From sequence record LC768500.1: 64,000 nt of DNA, one strand, 5' to 3'. Within the stretch, counting starts at the first letter, position 1. Every line of letters starts with the position of its first letter. Under the pieces are notes generated by a model, which was not told the origin of the DNA, ran no database searches, and was given only the letters and a program-made list of their open reading frames with translations. Made by a program: the position numbers and the translations under genes. Shown piece by piece: positions 12,990 to 63,961 of this stretch.

Positions 12990-14444
12990 ATGAGTACCCC
13001 TTTTCAATTTTTACAAAATGTAAAAAGCAGCCCGATGGTTCACATCGGTTTTAACTATAGTCCGCTTTTTGATATGATCAATGGCCGGTTCTTTAAGGGA
13101 TACGATGAACAGTATTACCTGAACGGTGGGATCATGGACAACAACGCCACAGTAGGAGGAAGCAACACGCAGAAAACCGGACAGTTGGTATTTGCCTGCC
13201 GTCGTTTCCTGCAACGTTTCCCTATGGGGGTAATCATCTATGTTGACAGCGAGTCCACGTTAGACATTGGACGATTGGCTGATGCTGTCGATGCTGATTT
13301 CGGTATCCCTGGGTACTTCTACGATGAGATCTTCGACAAACGGTTCATCTATAAAACGAGTAAAGATGAATTCGATGGCACCGCTTTCCACAACCTCATC
13401 AAAGACGCTTACAACAACTTCAAGGACAACAAAGATAACCCGGACATGTATGTCCAAACTCCGTTCCTGGATAAAGAAAATAAACGGATCAAATGTATTG
13501 CGCCGATCATGGTTATCTGTGATTCTTTAAGCGACCTTCGTTTCACCGAGGCTTCCGCCAAATTCACAGAAGGTGATGTGGACGAGGGTGGTAAGAAACG
13601 CACTCGTGATATGGAGTTCGGTAACCTCAAACGCGTTGTCTTTGAAGACTCCAGCAACCTGGGTGGCATCGCCGGCCTCAGACTGTGGTGGGTGGGTCAG
13701 ATCGCCGACATGATTAACATGGACGGTAAGCCGATGGAGAAACAATCCACCTTCATCCGCCCAGGTAAGAAGATCGCCAAGTGTCCTAAAGCGATTCTCC
13801 AGCTCCCGAGCATCGGTTATGAGATCATTAAAGGCAGTGGGTTGAAAGTCGATCAAGAATGGATGTACCCGAATCCATTCGGTCGCGATGTTGTTATCGA
13901 CGCCGACGCCAGAGAAAACCCGGATTTATTACTTTACAGCTTTACAATGTATCGTAATAAAGGCGGGAGTTCCGGACTACAATGTTCTTTCATCGGTTCT
14001 CAGTCAGACGGGATCCAGGAAGGGCTGAGCATGTATCACACCATTAAAACCGACGGTTATTTCGGTTTAAGTGTGGGCAGCAAGGTCAGTCACGCTTGTG
14101 ACCTCATGCCGGACCTTAAAGTTGGCCGAACCACCATTCGTAAAATCGTCAATGAGAACCACCAATTCTACAGGGCGATCACTATCTGTTACCAGATGTG
14201 GTTCATGCAGAACTATTGGATGCGTTTGGATCACAAATACCGCATGACGCCAGCCGAATTATATGCGAAGGTGGCTGAAGCCGGTTACGACTGGACAGAA
14301 TTATTGGAAAACTCCGTCGATTACTGGCACCTCAACCCGGACATCAAGAAACATACTCTGACCACCATGCAGCTGTTGGCTGTTGCGTGTGGAGAAGGTT
14401 CTATTCCGTGGGCTTCTAATCGTTTATTAAAGCAAGCGGCATAA
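12990..14444 (+). CDS. uvsX: UvsX/RecA-like recombinase
   Basis: P-loop variant GGSNTQKT, YVDSESTLD, Walker B VICDSLS; 484 aa, the size typical of the phiKZ gp152 family. Confidence 0.85.
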   Translation: MSTPFQFLQNVKSSPMVHIGFNYSPLFDMINGRFFKGYDEQYYLNGGIMDNNATVGGSNTQKTGQLVFACRRFLQRFPMGVIIYVDSESTLDIGRLADAVDADFGIPGYFYDEIFDKRFIYKTSKDEFDGTAFHNLIKDAYNNFKDNKDNPDMYVQTPFLDKENKRIKCIAPIMVICDSLSDLRFTEASAKFTEGDVDEGGKKRTRDMEFGNLKRVVFEDSSNLGGIAGLRLWWVGQIADMINMDGKPMEKQSTFIRPGKKIAKCPKAILQLPSIGYEIIKGSGLKVDQEWMYPNPFGRDVVIDADARENPDLLLYSFTMYRNKGGSSGLQCSFIGSQSDGIQEGLSMYHTIKTDGYFGLSVGSKVSHACDLMPDLKVGRTTIRKIVNENHQFYRAITICYQMWFMQNYWMRLDHKYRMTPAELYAKVAEAGYDWTELLENSVDYWHLNPDIKKHTLTTMQLLAVACGEGSIPWASNRLLKQAA

Positions 14445-14874: not shown

Positions 14875-15549
14875 ATGGGTAACAGAAAAGCTGCCGAAGA
14901 CGTTATTTTGGATTTCGTGGGCAAACTCACTAAAGGTGGGTTTAACCTGAAGGTCTATACCGACCTTTTTAAAAACATGAACGACGCTCAGTTTGAACAG
15001 TTTATCGATAAGATCGATAAACAAGGTGGTATGCCGCTATGGACATCCAACTGGGATAAGAACGAGCATATCGAATACGACACTGTCCTCGGACTAGCCA
15101 AAGAATACGGGGTAGAACTCGAGACCCAACTCATTATCACCGATGAGGACACTGGGGTAGAACTCATCACACCAGAAACTTATTTGGTTGGGATAGCCGA
15201 GATCCGTAAACAGCGTCAGATGCTCGTTAAAAAGTTTGGTGCTGCTAAAGACGATACCAGCACCGACGACTTAACGGGTCAGGTTGTTGGGGATAGCCGA
15301 GGGACGGGCATTTCCTCTCCGGAGATTAAGATCCTTATGGCGCTCGGGCTCAACACCGTGGCAAAAGAGATCTACGATGTCAAAGGCGGTGATGAAAAGG
15401 CATTGGAAGTTTATAGAACAGAGCTCATGGAGACTGGATCGACTAACGTTAACAATGCCTTGAAGCGCGGCAGTGGTGTCAAATCCCTTCAGACCACCCA
15501 TTATCTGTTTAACGCCAGACACATCGAAAACAATATCGATAAGAGGTAA
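14875..15549 (+). CDS. Virion RNA polymerase beta subunit, C-terminal fragment (phiKZ gp149-like)
   Basis: KKFGAAKDDTSTDDLTGQVVGDSRGTGISSPE aligns with RpoB KMHAR...[22 protein letters not shown]; synteny after uvsX. Confidence 0.8.
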   Translation: MGNRKAAEDVILDFVGKLTKGGFNLKVYTDLFKNMNDAQFEQFIDKIDKQGGMPLWTSNWDKNEHIEYDTVLGLAKEYGVELETQLIITDEDTGVELITPETYLVGIAEIRKQRQMLVKKFGAAKDDTSTDDLTGQVVGDSRGTGISSPEIKILMALGLNTVAKEIYDVKGGDEKALEVYRTELMETGSTNVNNALKRGSGVKSLQTTHYLFNARHIENNIDKR

Positions 15550-15989: not shown

Positions 15990-16688
15990 ATGAACACGCT
16001 TAACGTTTACACCGAACTCGATTCACTTTTTGATTCCCGGCGTGCGACTTTGGAATCACTCCTCCCTAGTAATGAAACCTGGGAAGGTGTTTACGCCAAG
16101 CAGTATAAAGAACGTAAGCTGGATCTATTCGAACGAAAAGAACTCGGGATAACCCAATCCATTTACGAACAGGCTTATGACAAAAGAGACCTGTCTTTAT
16201 TCACCAACATCAAACCGACTCAAGTACTGAGCAAGCTCCTGCTGTTAGTACTGGATAGCGAACAACTGGTCGGTAAACCAATCGCTTTAAACGTCGTCAA
16301 CATCACCATTAATCTTTATCCCTACGATCTTGACGAAGATTTGGTTAACGAGTTAGAAAAGAATATCAAACAAGCTTTGGTTTTCAAAAATGAACTCACT
16401 TTTGTTTCCAAACCTCCTACCGAACTCGATGCGAAATATTTTAAAAACTTTGATAACGTTTTTAAATACGACATCCTGATCGGTAAAGATTCTAAAACGT
16501 TCATGGAATCCTTAGCGAAAACTCCTATTAAAGACACGAAGTTCTTCGTACCGGATCTTTATGTTAAACAACCGGATAACGGGATCGTTTGCTCCCCTGA
16601 AGAACTTGTTGAAAGTTTTAGTTTAGTGCTTGCGCCAGCGCTTACATTACTTTGCGTCCGACATAGCGTTTATGATTACATGGAATAA
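15990..16688 (+). CDS. Hypothetical protein with HAD-like N-terminal motif
   Basis: VYTELDSLFDSR resembles HAD motif I. Confidence 0.6.
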   Translation: MNTLNVYTELDSLFDSRRATLESLLPSNETWEGVYAKQYKERKLDLFERKELGITQSIYEQAYDKRDLSLFTNIKPTQVLSKLLLLVLDSEQLVGKPIALNVVNITINLYPYDLDEDLVNELEKNIKQALVFKNELTFVSKPPTELDAKYFKNFDNVFKYDILIGKDSKTFMESLAKTPIKDTKFFVPDLYVKQPDNGIVCSPEELVESFSLVLAPALTLLCVRHSVYDYME

Positions 16689-16690
16689 CA

Positions 16691-16715
16691 GGAGAGAGGG
16701 CATTGCCCTCTCTCC
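16691..16715. terminator. Bidirectional terminator
   Basis: GGAGAGAGGGC-att-GCCCTCTCTCC between convergent ORFs. Confidence 0.75.
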
Positions 16716-16719
16716 CATT

Positions 16720-17214
16720 TTATACTGATGGCTTAACAATTTCACCTTCAAAGTCAACTGATATGGCGCCCATATCAAGTTCTTTGTCTTTGATCCTGCC
16801 GATATCGGCGAGTTGTGAAAGTGGAACATTAGGATCCAGGAAGGTAGGCTGACCTGGCGCGAAACTAGGAAGTTTTAATTCACCGGTGCTTAATGACTGA
16901 AGTGCGTCGACCATTTGTTTGAATGAAACTTTGTTGTCTTCATTCTCTTTTTTCTTCGCGCGTTCTTTTCTGTCATCTCGAACTGATTTTTCCAACTGAG
17001 TTAACAAAGAAGAAATCGCTTCCAGTAATTTAGGGTCACCGGGTTTATTGGAGTAAGCCATAGAGGCGATATCCAGTATCATACTACGGTGTGACTGCAC
17101 CGCCTGAATGAGCTGAGTCTGTTCAATATCTTCGTCAGTCGGATGGAGAGCAGCATTGATTGCAGACATCACCTTTTCTATCCGTATCTGAACGGGTGCT
17201 TTTTCGTCCATCAT
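16720..17214 (-). CDS. Candidate small terminase subunit (T4 gp16-like)
   Basis: DPKLLEAISSLLTQLEKSVRD matches the recalled T4 gp16 core [21 protein letters not shown]; 164 aa. Confidence 0.45.
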   Translation of the reverse strand: MMDEKAPVQIRIEKVMSAINAALHPTDEDIEQTQLIQAVQSHRSMILDIASMAYSNKPGDPKLLEAISSLLTQLEKSVRDDRKERAKKKENEDNKVSFKQMVDALQSLSTGELKLPSFAPGQPTFLDPNVPLSQLADIGRIKDKELDMGAISVDFEGEIVKPSV

Positions 17215-17284
17215 AATTTTTTAAACCTACATTATAGAAGTAGTGGAATAAATAAAATGTTTTTAGCCCTTAGGGAACGTTAAC

Positions 17285-17878
17285 ATGCTTAAGAAATTTT
17301 TCAACTGGCTGGGGTTTAAAAGCAAATCGATAGGTAAGGCAGATACCCCGTTAGACGTCATAGAACGCATCAGGGAAGGCTTTCTTCCTAAGAACATGCG
17401 AAGCTTAGATAAACCGTTGTCTCTTCTATACGATTTAATTAAGACGCTTCCTGAGCTGGAATACAATGATTATAAAAAGTTACAGCGTAACACAGTTAAG
17501 GTTAGATCGCTGAGTTCGTTAGACATGTTCCATCTTTTAAAATCATCGGTTTTATCCAGCCAAGCGGAATATATGGATGCGGTGCAACGTTTAAATAGCG
17601 TCGCTACCGAAAGGCCCTTTCTTCATTGGTACTCTGGAGAGGAAAGCGCTATCGCACTTAACGAATTGTTTTTAAAACTTCTACCTAAAATAATCCTTTT
17701 CCACCAACTTAACAACCAGAGTACATTTCAACAGAATGAAGATATAACCGGATTTACGAATATCGAGATCCGGTTCTTTAGTTCTGTTCAGCTAAGGTAT
17801 ATGGTCGAAGACTATATCAGCATGTTGGAAGTGCTACTCTCACATCATTTTGGAGGCTCGGTTGAAGAAGCCCACTAA
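17285..17878 (+). CDS. Hypothetical protein
   Basis: 197-aa ORF. Confidence 0.75.
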   Translation: MLKKFFNWLGFKSKSIGKADTPLDVIERIREGFLPKNMRSLDKPLSLLYDLIKTLPELEYNDYKKLQRNTVKVRSLSSLDMFHLLKSSVLSSQAEYMDAVQRLNSVATERPFLHWYSGEESAIALNELFLKLLPKIILFHQLNNQSTFQQNEDITGFTNIEIRFFSSVQLRYMVEDYISMLEVLLSHHFGGSVEEAH

Positions 17879-53274: not shown

Positions 53275-56200
53275 ATGTTTGCAAGTAAAGACGAATTAGA
53301 ACTACATCTTGCAAGAGAAAAACTTGCTATGATAGGAGCGACAGAAAGTCAGCTCCCCGAATACCTGCTCGATGACGACACAGAAGCGCTTCCCATCAGG
53401 ACCCCAGAAGAGTTGCTTCTAGCCCATTATCGAGAAGATACGTTAAGCGCGATCAAAACGGTCAGGTTCTTAAAGGACTTCGAACGTTATAACGCTAAAC
53501 CGGATCTGACGACGAAGAACATCTCTTTCTTAAAGGTTGCTGAAATCTTTAGACTGATGGGAATAAAGAATTACTATTTCTGCCTCCAGCTCAACAATCC
53601 GTTGCTGATAGGGGTGGATCCTTACGACCCCAACCTGACAGATGAACAAAAATTCATGATCCTCCAGGAGTGCCGTGAAAACTTCTGGTATTTCCTCCGT
53701 GAAGTACTTCATTTGAGTGGGGGTATTCAGTTCCAGGCAAACAGAGCAAACATCTGTTTCTTATGGTGTTATTTGTGTCACGTCAACACCATGCTTATCA
53801 TTCCCCGCCAATTTGGAAAGCTGAGCAAGCTAGATTCCTTAGTGAAGATCCCAAATGGATGGCGTAGAATGGGTGACATCAAGATTAATGATGTGGTTAG
53901 TACTCCAGATGGGGGTACGGCTAGAGTCTCTGGTGTTTATCCTCAGGGCGTTAAATCGTTATATCGTGTTACCTTTTATGACGGTCGTACGGCGGATGTT
54001 GGCGCCGAGCATTACTGGACTGTTTGGGACCCAGGTAAAGGCGACGGTGGCATCTGGCGCACACTCACTACGTTAGAATGCCAACAACGCATGACTGAGA
54101 TGAAGAAGTCGCATAACTATCTCTCCGTTCCTTTGGTTCAGCCTGATAATGACCCGGACAAGAAACTCGCCATTCATCCTTATGTCTTAGGTGTATTGCT
54201 GGGTGACGGCGGTATTTCTGGCAGTTCTGTTTTAATAACCAAACCCGACAAAGAACTTTACGATAAAGTCTGTAGTCTCATTCCTGATACTCTAGTCGCC
54301 GAATGGTGTAATGAAAAAACATTTGTCATTAAGCGCAGACCTGATGTTGAAGAAAAGACTAACGTAATGAAAGATAGTCTTAAAAGTGTTGATCTGATGG
54401 GCCTTCGGTCCTGGGAGAAATTTGTTCCTACAGATTATTTAAACGGCTCTTATCGTCAGCGTTTAGAGTTGTTGCAGGGTTTACTCGATACTGATGGACA
54501 CGCAGGTACCGGTGGTAACATTGAGTACTGTACGACGTCCCCCAAACTCGCTAAAGACTTCGTTTACCTTGCTCGTAGCATCGGTGCTATCTGTACTTGT
54601 AAAGAACGCCAGACGTATTATACCGACAAAGGAGAACGTAAACCTGGCCGGGTTTCTTATCGCATTAGCGTTCGTTATACGAAACCCTGGGAACTCTTCA
54701 CGTTAAGTCGTAAACGGGATCGTTTAGTTGACAAAACACGAGGGTTAAAATTTAACAGCCGTTTAACCATGCGTTCCATCGAGTATGTAGGGGAAGAAGA
54801 GACTCAGTGCATTGAAGTGGACCATCCTGATCATCTTTACATCATGGATGATTTCGTCGTCACTCATAATACTGTTTCTGCTCAGAGCATTATGTTCTGG
54901 CTAACTTACTTAACCGGGAAGTCTTACGAGTCCCACTTAATCACCCTGAAAGACGATAACCGTAGTCAGTTCGTAGAGGCGTTAAAGGGTATCCGTAACA
55001 ACATCCCGAGTTACTTAACCAACGTGGGGTGGCGAGATAAGGATAGCGGTAACTCGTTAACCTATAGTGCGTTTGGGGATGATAAGAAAAACATCTTCCG
55101 TATTAGCGTGCCGCAAATCGGTAGAGAAGCCGCTCGTAACGTCGGTCGTGGTTTGACTATCAAAACGCGTATGATCGACGAACCGGCATATATCAACTTC
55201 ATGGAAGAGATACTTAACGGTGCAGGTCCTAGTACGCTAACGGCTCGTGCTAACGCCAGAAGAATAGGCGAACCCTACGGGACGGGATTCATTACCACGC
55301 CTGCGAGTAAAACGACAGCCAGCGGCGAATACATGTACAACATGTTGATGGATGCGACCGAGTGGCGAGAAACGTTCTTCGACAGTTTTAACGAAAGTCA
55401 TCTGTACCAGCGTTTGATTAAAGCGAGTCCTGTGGAGGGAATCACCAGTCCTACCGTAGGCATGGTTTTCAACTACTTGCAGTTGGGTAGGAATAAAGAC
55501 TGGGTTAAGAAAACCATAGACGAGTTAAAGTTAAGTTTAGCCGAAGCGAAGATTGACTTACTGTTAATGTGGGACGATGCCAGTAAAGGTAAACTTTTCG
55601 ACGACTTAACTCGAGAAGCATTAAACGAGGGTAAACGAGGAATACTCTGGAGTCAGGAAGTAGGGAGTACGGGGTTGTTCATCGACTGGTTTATTACGCC
55701 AGAAGAACACACTCAAATCATTACTGGGAATAGTCAAACCTTTTACGTCGTCGGTTGTGATACTTCCGCTGCGCAAAACCGAGACGCCTGTACTGTCGTG
55801 ATAAGAGACGTCATGGACGGTAAAGTGATTGGGGTGGGTCGTTATCCGATAGCCTACTTAATGGACGTAGGCGAGGTATTACAGACGATCCTGTTAGAGA
55901 TTAAGAACAGCTTACTGATCATCGAGCGTAACTTCGCGCACCACATGATCGACCAACTGCTCGTTAGTCTTCCTGCATTAGGCATCGATCCCTTTAAACG
56001 TATCTTTAATCAGATCGTACAAGATCCGGTTAAGTACGAAAAAGAAATGATCGAGTTTAAACAACGTAATTTCGCTAACAGAGACAGTCACTTCTATCTG
56101 AGATTCAAACATCTGTTTGGGTTCGTTACCAATGCCAAAACGCGTGACGAAGTATATAGTTTTATCCAGGAAGCCGTAGGGACGACCGGAGATAAAATTT

Positions 56201-56673
56201 ACTATACCAAACTCATCGACGAGCTGGTTAACCTCAAAGAGAAGGGAGGTAGGATAGACCACGAAAACAACAAACACGATGACCTGGTTATCGCTTGGTT
56301 GTTGGGATTCTGGTTCTTGAAACTAGGTAACAACAAAAGTGAGTACGGAATTCCTCCAGGCATTAGTTTGAGTAAAATCAGCTTAATGCGTGTTGGGGAC
56401 GATAAGAATGAGGAAACCAACAGTGCGCACAATGAAGCGATGGTTGCACTCTATCGTCGTAAAGTTGAAGAGCTGAGTGACAGACTTATTAAAACCACCG
56501 ACAATACCGTAGCTCAAAGGATCGAGTACATGATTGACAAACTCAGCAGCATGATCCCTCAGGATAAGCGTAAGAGTTTGACCATCGATGAAATCGTTAG
56601 GAAAGCCAAGGAAGAAAGAGGCCGTCGAGTATTGGAAGCACGTAAGTTACGCAGTCGTTACGTGTATATCTAA
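53275..56673 (+). CDS. terL: Terminase large subunit containing an intein (782 aa after splicing)
   Basis: ECRENFWYFLRE, PRQFGK|T Walker A, MIDEPAY Walker B, VVGCDTS nuclease motif, HDDLVIAW. Confidence 0.93.
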   Translation: MFASKDELELHLAREKLAMIGATESQLPEYLLDDDTEALPIRTPEELLLAHYREDTLSAIKTVRFLKDFERYNAKPDLTTKNISFLKVAEIFRLMGIKNYYFCLQLNNPLLIGVDPYDPNLTDEQKFMILQECRENFWYFLREVLHLSGGIQFQANRANICFLWCYLCHVNTMLIIPRQFGKLSKLDSLVKIPNGWRRMGDIKINDVVSTPDGGTARVSGVYPQGVKSLYRVTFYDGRTADVGAEHYWTVWDPGKGDGGIWRTLTTLECQQRMTEMKKSHNYLSVPLVQPDNDPDKKLAIHPYVLGVLLGDGGISGSSVLITKPDKELYDKVCSLIPDTLVAEWCNEKTFVIKRRPDVEEKTNVMKDSLKSVDLMGLRSWEKFVPTDYLNGSYRQRLELLQGLLDTDGHAGTGGNIEYCTTSPKLAKDFVYLARSIGAICTCKERQTYYTDKGERKPGRVSYRISVRYTKPWELFTLSRKRDRLVDKTRGLKFNSRLTMRSIEYVGEEETQCIEVDHPDHLYIMDDFVVTHNTVSAQSIMFWLTYLTGKSYESHLITLKDDNRSQFVEALKGIRNNIPSYLTNVGWRDKDSGNSLTYSAFGDDKKNIFRISVPQIGREAARNVGRGLTIKTRMIDEPAYINFMEEILNGAGPSTLTARANARRIGEPYGTGFITTPASKTTASGEYMYNMLMDATEWRETFFDSFNESHLYQRLIKASPVEGITSPTVGMVFNYLQLGRNKDWVKKTIDELKLSLAEAKIDLLLMWDDASKGKLFDDLTREALNEGKRGILWSQEVGSTGLFIDWFITPEEHTQIITGNSQTFYVVGCDTSAAQNRDACTVVIRDVMDGKVIGVGRYPIAYLMDVGEVLQTILLEIKNSLLIIERNFAHHMIDQLLVSLPALGIDPFKRIFNQIVQDPVKYEKEMIEFKQRNFANRDSHFYLRFKHLFGFVTNAKTRDEVYSFIQEAVGTTGDKIYYTKLIDELVNLKEKGGRIDHENNKHDDLVIAWLLGFWFLKLGNNKSEYGIPPGISLSKISLMRVGDDKNEETNSAHNEAMVALYRRKVEELSDRLIKTTDNTVAQRIEYMIDKLSSMIPQDKRKSLTIDEIVRKAKEERGRRVLEARKLRSRYVYI
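53821..54870 (+). mobile_element. 350-aa class 3 intein with LAGLIDADG endonuclease
   Basis: Starts LSKLDSLVKIPNGW, block B HYW, LGVLLGDG and LQGLLDTDG, block F TQCIEV, ends VTHN|T. Confidence 0.92.
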
Positions 56674-62579: not shown

Positions 62580-63425
62580 CTAGATCCGACTCGGGACTGA
62601 ATTTCTGATGGCGTTGTATCTCCGATCCGGGTCAGAATACGTCATGAGTTTTATCCAGCGAGTTTTAAACAATTCTTCGTACTGGTTAAGACTATCACGG
62701 TATTCGGCGATGTCGTCACGGATGATATCAACTTGAACCCCAGAACGCGCCACGCCTTCGTCGACTTTGTATCGAACGGTTTTCCAGATATAATTCTTGG
62801 TCATCAGGATAACCAAGTCGGCGAATACGTCGTAGGCTCTTGGATGGATCGTCGATAACCCATCGTCGTAACTCAGGATAAGTTTACCTGTCAGGGAGAA
62901 CACCCCACTCGGCGCCCCATGAATTACAAACGAGTTATTCCCGACGAGGGTTATGTTCGTGAACGTCTGGGGGATTTCTCGGTTGGGTAGCATCCCGTTG
63001 ATCATGGAGTTCAATGCGTCGTTGACAGTACCTACCCCACAGGAGTCGGCGTTGCCAAGCACGCTCATGATTCCGCTGGAGGAATTCATCGCCCCCTGGT
63101 AAACTTCCACAACCGAAATAATTTTCCGACCACCCGTCAAGAAATCTGGAACGTTCACCAGTTCCATTCCCTGTCCGAGATGTTCGATCCGTGATCCGGT
63201 TAAATCAATCAGTTCGGTTACCCCACCCTGGACGTTGCACCGGGGTAGGATGATCGCATGTATAATTTTTTCTCGAATACCTTGCTGAACGGTGGTCTGC
63301 GCGTACTGGTTATACCAGTTCCCGGTCAGATTCCCGTTAGGGTTCGAGAACGCAAGCTCCAACAGGTACTCAGGGATGTCACTCCCGTTGAGAACTTTGT
63401 TGATCGCGTAGTCCACGCAGTTCAT
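62580..63425 (-). CDS. Conserved jumbo-phage hypothetical protein
   Basis: GGAG RBS favours ATG 63425 (MNCVDYAINKV); 8-nt gap to the next gene. Confidence 0.75.
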   Translation of the reverse strand: MNCVDYAINKVLNGSDIPEYLLELAFSNPNGNLTGNWYNQYAQTTVQQGIREKIIHAIILPRCNVQGGVTELIDLTGSRIEHLGQGMELVNVPDFLTGGRKIISVVEVYQGAMNSSSGIMSVLGNADSCGVGTVNDALNSMINGMLPNREIPQTFTNITLVGNNSFVIHGAPSGVFSLTGKLILSYDDGLSTIHPRAYDVFADLVILMTKNYIWKTVRYKVDEGVARSGVQVDIIRDDIAEYRDSLNQYEELFKTRWIKLMTYSDPDRRYNAIRNSVPSRI

Positions 63426-63961
63426 AATCAACTCCCACACTGAGTTTCGGGACTGGAGAAATTTCCGTCTCGATAAAAAATTCAACTGAGAATTTTTACT
63501 CTGGGGTTTTCGGCGGTTATAATATTCCACTGCGGGAATTTAAAAACTCATCGGGTTTATGATCCCGTATGTTTTTGAGTTTTATTTCCCGTATAAAATA
63601 CTCCGTGCCGTAAGATAACACCCCACAGAAAAAACCTCGCCTTCGGAACATTTCCTCGAAGGCGAGTTGCCATGATCTCACTCGAGCAAGAATCAATCCG
63701 ACATACAATCCCAAGCGTTCCAAATATTTTCCATCGGGATTTTGGTTATCTGTAAATTTTTACACATGAATCTATTTTATATTAATATTTTTCGCGTGCG
63801 CGGATATTCTAAATTTTCAAAGATAATCTAAAACCGATTCCAGTTCTGGGTTTTTATTTTTCTGTGTTTTGATTTTCCAAATCCAATTTTCAAAAATCTA
63901 AATCTAAAAAATCTAAAAAATTTAATACTCAAAAAAATCAATTTTTCCTAGGGGTCCTTAT

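Follow-up and report, generated by a model that had tools for sequence, protein, structure and literature searches.

Among small terminases (TerS), the best reference for the gene considered here is gp16 of phage T4, a protein of 164 residues that belongs to the Pfam family PF11053 (DNA_Packaging) and for which structures are available both from T4 (9OOX) and from phage 44RR (3TXQ and 3TXS). The situation is different in the nucleus-forming jumbo phages, or chimalliviruses. Two recent reviews and the text of the phiKZ Tn-seq paper (PMC12676376) name the large terminase alone, and in this group the small subunit therefore has no settled assignment. However, a preprint describing Tn-seq of Serratia phage PCH45 lists a "small terminase (gp77)" as essential, though outside the core genome, so that one chimallivirus protein already carries this label (10.64898/2025.12.19.695335). 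The basis given there for the name is only a generic pipeline of BLAST, HHpred, AlphaFold DB and Foldseek.

The DNA analyzed here, a stretch of 64,000 nucleotides from record LC768500.1 (hereafter, the window), comes from Klebsiella phage phiKp_32, a Miami-like chimallivirus, to which it is 100% identical over the 3 kb tested; over these 3 kb, its identity to phage Miami is about 97%. A previous examination of the letters by themselves (the sequence-only reading) had proposed the ORF at 16720-17214 as a candidate small terminase, adding that TerS was not firmly assigned in this phage group, a remark that agrees with the two reviews and the phiKZ text and must be qualified in view of the PCH45 label. 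As developed below, the best single hypothesis is that this ORF encodes the chimallivirus TerS or a functional equivalent, although we place its likelihood slightly below an even chance.

The gene at 16720-17214 and its product

The candidate gene (16720..17214, minus strand) opens with an ATG and encodes a protein of 164 residues (P0001). Of its 495 bases, 24 differ from those in Miami and, because all of these differences are synonymous, it is a genuine gene under strong purifying selection. The intergenic region upstream of it (17215..17284, minus strand) is common to a divergent gene at 17285 and contains a ribosome-binding site, AGGT, at 17225-17228, that is, 11-14 nt 5' of the start codon; a ribosome-binding site is also annotated in the Miami record. 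On the opposite side, a terminator scan identified a perfect 11-bp GC-rich hairpin (16691..16715) lying between the convergent genes at 15990-16688 (plus strand) and 16720-17214 (minus strand), which the Miami record also gives as a terminator. This hairpin is likely a two-way intrinsic terminator, closing a single-gene transcription unit for the candidate. The 950-bp stretch in which it is found is enriched in terminator-like sites, with seven found versus 0.6 expected.

The convergent neighbor (15990..16688, plus strand; phrog_3328) serves as an anchor for synteny: it is the equivalent of EL ORF177 and Ea35-70 gp155, and stands where PCH45 has gp76 and phiKZ has gp168. This neighbor is conserved across chimalliviruses, yet its counterparts in phiKZ and PCH45 tolerate transposon insertions and are dispensable. 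On the same strand, a 224-residue protein (14875-15549, plus strand) matches the PHROG family "RNA polymerase beta subunit" (phrog_3233, 9.7e-80), an annotation likewise borne by its Ea35-70 counterpart, and a UvsX-like recombinase is encoded just upstream (12990-14444, plus strand).

The product of the candidate gene appears in databases as Miami gp226, EL ORF178 and OBP_271, all of them recorded as hypothetical, and it matches phrog_14363 (unknown function) at 1.6e-51. Among 5.8 billion clustered proteins, 26 relatives were found, and a full profile search with HMMER, covering 1.84 billion representatives, produced 28 matches with no bridge to other families; all of these proteins, from both searches, fall within its own compact family. 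By tblastn, this family occurs in EL-, OBP-, RisingSun-, Aeromonas- and Vibrio-type jumbo phages. Pfam searches with the protein and with all 19 family members gave only sub-threshold noise, a profile search of PDB sequences gave only chance matches, and no alternative known family was matched in the Pfam, PHROG and PDB-sequence searches. In the ESM Atlas, 4 of the 30 nearest clusters carry PF11053, which is the sole Pfam family present among them (score 0.91, 198 of 256 features).

The AF2 model of the protein begins with an N-terminal helix (residues 7-23); two long helices, 33-56 and 61-109, then form a hairpin, and residues 110-164 make up an acidic tail of low confidence. This shape agrees with the description in the sequence-only reading (a helical hairpin, a charged coil and a poorly structured C-terminus), and the hairpin carries the charged segment EKSVRDDRKER. 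In the family alignment (A1), conservation is strongest at Q-[LM]-EKSVRDDRKER on the second hairpin helix, with the EKSVRDDRKER portion invariant, and the tail bears a conserved LP[ST]F...LDP motif. Structural searches with Foldseek (PDB and BFVD) and VIA-align (48,161 chains) retrieved generic helical hairpins only, with a best Z of 7.1. Among viral models, the best non-self Foldseek match, and the sole family-relevant one, was gp156 of phage Ea35-70 (W6ARQ6, probability 0.77).

Possible kinship with T4 gp16 and a non-terminase alternative

The proposal that the ORF encodes a small terminase was born from its resemblance to gp16. The gp16 sequence quoted in the sequence-only reading is correct and represents residues 62-99 of the protein (NC_000866). 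The 20-residue pattern P-[KR]-x-x-E-x4-L-x-x-Q-[LM]-x-x-[ST]-x-R-[DE] is found gap-free at P61-D80 of the ORF and at P80-E99 of gp16. The statement that both proteins align almost residue for residue was excessive, since, even though the pattern and the quoted peptide are present, identity is about 22% over some 40 columns; BLASTP of the candidate against gp16 gave nothing. In the profile comparisons by which the candidate was to be checked, HMMER found no PF11053 match at E up to 10, either for the protein or across the 19 members of its family, and hhalign against gp16 yielded borderline P values of 0.0033-0.0064.

The first of these values derives from the comparison of A1 with the gp16 alignment, which scored 25.3 (probability 9.6%) on the motif stretch. 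The second was obtained with broader profiles, built from 38 family members and from a gp16 set including Vibrio, cyanophage and Pseudoalteromonas phages, with a score of 24.0 and the register unchanged; probabilities were 6-10% overall. The divergent gp16 sequences were drawn from GenBank phages, and a search for related loci with the gp16 alignment gave close T4-like relatives only. In 200 column shuffles used as controls, the 99th percentile was 24.0 and the maximum 26.0, with reversed profiles scoring about 14, which situates the score of 25.3 at approximately the 1% level.

The structural comparison can be made with models obtained by the same AF2 procedure for the candidate (helix 33-56, turn 57-60, helix 61-109) and for a protein 99% identical to T4 gp16 (P0029; helix 45-77, turn 78-79, helix 80-113). 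P61 of the ORF aligns with P80 of the gp16 relative, and each is the first residue of the second hairpin helix; in both models, a low-confidence tail begins at around residue 110-117. The candidate and gp16 are thus alike in length (164 residues each) and in their sequence of N-terminal region, central two-helix hairpin and low-confidence C-terminal tail, and they share collinear blocks in helix 1 (MILDIA versus MLMDAA) and helix 2 ([DS]-P-[KR]-x-[LM]-E-x4-L-x-x-Q). They differ in that helix 1 of the candidate is shorter (24 versus 33 residues), its helix 2 is longer (49 versus 34) and it has an extra N-terminal helix, while gp16 lacks the invariant basic stretch EKSVRDDRKER. The solved gp16 structures 3TXQ, 3TXS and 9OOX were absent among the listed Foldseek PDB and VIA-align matches, a two-helix hairpin being a poor discriminator.

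A calibration of the motif came from scanning the gp16 profile against the 125 window ORFs of 70 or more residues. The candidate ranked second by HMMER (E 0.17) and, as a single sequence, fell outside the hhalign top eight. The first position by both methods corresponded to the ORF at 62580-63530 (minus strand), in which HPRAYDVFADLVILMTKN scores 28.9 by hhalign. Despite its better motif match, this ORF was rejected as a rival TerS, as it encodes a portal-vertex protein homologous to the solved 12-mer chains PHIKZ042 (9xpe), gp36 (36za) and gp233 (11ed). The real start of this portal-vertex ORF is probably M36, and HPRAYDVFADLVILMTKN, almost the same as HPRAYEV, the motif of cyanophage TerS, was taken as a chance match. 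Because a portal-vertex protein surpasses the candidate on the gp16 motif, chance can produce a match this strong in 64 kb of DNA, and the claim needs more than the motif to sustain it. From the sequence comparisons, kinship of the candidate with gp16 can be regarded as no more than suggestive.

These results leave room for a different interpretation, to which we also assign a likelihood not quite reaching one half: that the protein is a helical oligomer or adaptor, essential and specific to chimalliviruses, whose role is not that of a terminase, and that its gp16-like motif is convergent or fortuitous. It might, for example, regulate the phage RNA polymerase, dock capsids at the nuclear shell, or act as a chaperone or scaffold in head or tail assembly. 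A gp16 similarity at the level of the chance match in the portal-vertex protein fits this interpretation, as do the abundance of helical hairpins (526 PDB representatives at a Z of 5 or more in VIA-align), the existence of sister subfamilies with no gp16 signal (see below) and the lack of a gp16 counterpart for the invariant EKSVRDDRKER. The surroundings of the gene could be read in the same sense, given that a tape-measure-like gene, structural genes and the gene matching the PHROG "RNA polymerase beta subunit" are nearby. However, these neighbors are on the other strand and the candidate gene is its own transcription unit, so genomic context says little. Also against a non-terminase adaptor, no alternative family was matched, the language-model neighbors included no named family other than PF11053, and the genome is otherwise devoid of a TerS: neither PF11053 nor Terminase_2 had any match in the genome of phage Miami, used in this search as a stand-in for that of phiKp_32.

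A conserved slot in chimalliviruses

In Miami and EL, the gene is flanked by conserved genes and is the only one there with opposite orientation. An equivalent slot, with the same strand inversion and occupied by a protein of 152-182 residues, was found in 10 further phages, namely PCH45, phiKZ, 201phi2-1, PhiPA3, Noxifer, FBKp24, PhiEaH1, 2050HW, Totoro and Ea35-70. Defined as a lone opposite-strand gene following the EL ORF177-like gene, the slot is filled in all 12 phages compared, and its occupants include phiKZ gp169, 201phi2-1 gp255, PhiPA3 gp198, PCH45 gp77 and Ea35-70 gp156. Whole-genome profile searches revealed one member per genome, belonging to one subfamily only.

The phiKZ-type slot proteins constitute other sequence subfamilies (alignment A3), and a pairwise BLASTP comparison of the candidate with PCH45 gp77 gave nothing. 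In a search of 38,880 PHROG families, the candidate weakly matched phrog_5894 (E 0.0025), a family that also matches PCH45 gp77. The hhalign comparison of A1 with A3 was collinear (P 0.013) and exceeded the 99th percentile (19.3) of 200 column shuffles, with reversed profiles scoring about 15; when A1 and A3 are merged, the invariant positions of one family fall on those of the other. The phiKZ gp169/PCH45 gp77 type (phrog_5894) shares with the candidate family the positions Q-x-x-[RK], P-x-D and [ED]-[KR], and differs from it in lacking the DPKLLE and EKSVRDDRKER motifs. A bridge between both types is provided by gp156 of the Agricanvirus Ea35-70 (7.6e-5 to A3 and 0.016 to A1), which occupies the slot on the same strand and combines DPKML, found in the candidate family, with GDIDKS..RQR, found in the phiKZ type. 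It is a protein of 152 residues and its similarity to the candidate family is weak (hhalign P 0.016). The merged A1 and A3 alignment scored no higher against gp16 (23.5), and neither A3 nor Ea35-70 gp156 gave any signal with gp16.

Each of these sequence signals is weak alone, yet together they are concordant. The slot, the strand inversion, the profiles, the bridge and the single copy support the notion that the candidate and phiKZ gp169, PCH45 gp77 and Ea35-70 gp156 are remote homologs. We conclude that one fast-diverging, single-copy gene is present in every chimallivirus clade checked.

This relationship gives access to genetic data on the counterparts. As the GenBank record of PCH45 has no gene numbers, gp numbers were assigned by counting CDSs, which made the slot gene (QFP93181.1) the 77th; as a control, PHROG identifies CDS 159 as the large terminase, in agreement with the preprint (10.64898/2025.12.19.695335). 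In the supplement of the phiKZ Tn-seq preprint (PMC12676376), PHIKZ169 shows 3 and 7 counts in two files and its neighbor PHIKZ168 shows 18186 and 19462, the meaning of the columns being deduced by us; on this reading, hardly any transposon insertions fall in PHIKZ169. The pattern in PCH45 is parallel, with gp77 essential and gp76 dispensable (10.64898/2025.12.19.695335).

A last interpretation, which we regard as highly improbable, stems from ONT-cappable-seq work in which PHIKZ169 was defined as a single-gene transcription unit (TU123) and a moron-like origin was proposed (PMC10914365): the gene would be an accessory one, acquired alone and placed in opposite orientation between operons, as its single-gene, opposite-strand unit with its own terminator might suggest, but this interpretation is close to refuted, given that all clades examined (12 phages) have the slot occupied, that 24 of 24 Miami differences are synonymous and that the counterpart is nearly free of insertions in phiKZ (PMC12676376) and essential in PCH45 (10.64898/2025.12.19.695335).

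A putative small terminase of nucleus-forming phages

The reading of the protein as a small terminase is favored because several lines of evidence converge on it: the TerS slot of the genome is open; the family is essential, single-copy and does not look structural; size and architecture are gp16-like; the motif lies in structural register with that of gp16; PF11053 is the sole lead provided by the language model; and the counterpart in PCH45 was independently labeled in the literature. None of them is decisive singly. The original proposal thus retains its candidate on the conserved slot, the essential counterparts, the PCH45 label, the PF11053 neighbors and the position of the motif. The proposed homology to gp16 on which it was built fared worse, in view of the missing PF11053 HMM match, an hhalign probability under 10%, a fold that does not discriminate, a sister subfamily with no signal and a stronger chance match in the window.

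If the protein at 16720-17214 is a TerS, its presumed partner is the large terminase (TerL) encoded at 53275..56673 (plus strand), a protein of 1132 residues including an intein, recognized by its match to phrog_2 (2.6e-42), a LAGLIDADG_3 domain and its alignment to PCH45 TerL. Whereas T4 gene 16 overlaps gene 17, the candidate gene lies 36.1 kb from terL, in accordance with the 36 kb initially reported, and this separation counts against a TerS role. The PCH45 enzyme has 702 residues. The intein of the phiKp_32 protein (LAGLIDADG, about 350 residues, at approximately 53821-54870) is inserted within the Walker A loop (PRQFGK | intein ... VVTHN | TVSAQ), and its first residue is apparently Leu, which is unusual.

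A mechanism can be envisaged for such a small terminase, by analogy with T4 gp16. The two long helices (33-56 and 61-109) would form a hairpin, and neighboring hairpins would pack laterally to build a ring resembling that of T4 gp16. DNA might be contacted by helix 2, through its invariant basic stretch (R79, R82, K83 and R85), by the N-terminal helix, or by both. The flexible acidic tail, with its LP[ST]F...LDP motif, could then recruit and activate the large terminase, and this activation would start headful packaging of the replicated DNA.

A broader proposal can also be formulated, which we consider conceivable and, on balance, rather doubtful: that the candidate, phiKZ gp169, PCH45 gp77 and Ea35-70 gp156 represent a single hidden gene that belongs to the core of every nucleus-forming phage, missed by core-genome surveys through its fast divergence, and that its product is a very divergent T4-type TerS acting at the chimallin shell, where it would mark DNA inside the phage nucleus and, with TerL, hand it to capsids docked outside.

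A 2025 review counts the docking of capsids for packaging among the unknowns of nucleus-forming phages. A single-copy candidate for the small subunit, essential in relatives and traced across the diverged clades checked, makes the transfer of DNA from inside the chimallin shell into capsids docked on its outside testable. In addition, this candidate suggests that fast-diverging genes recoverable by synteny are missing from the published core genome.
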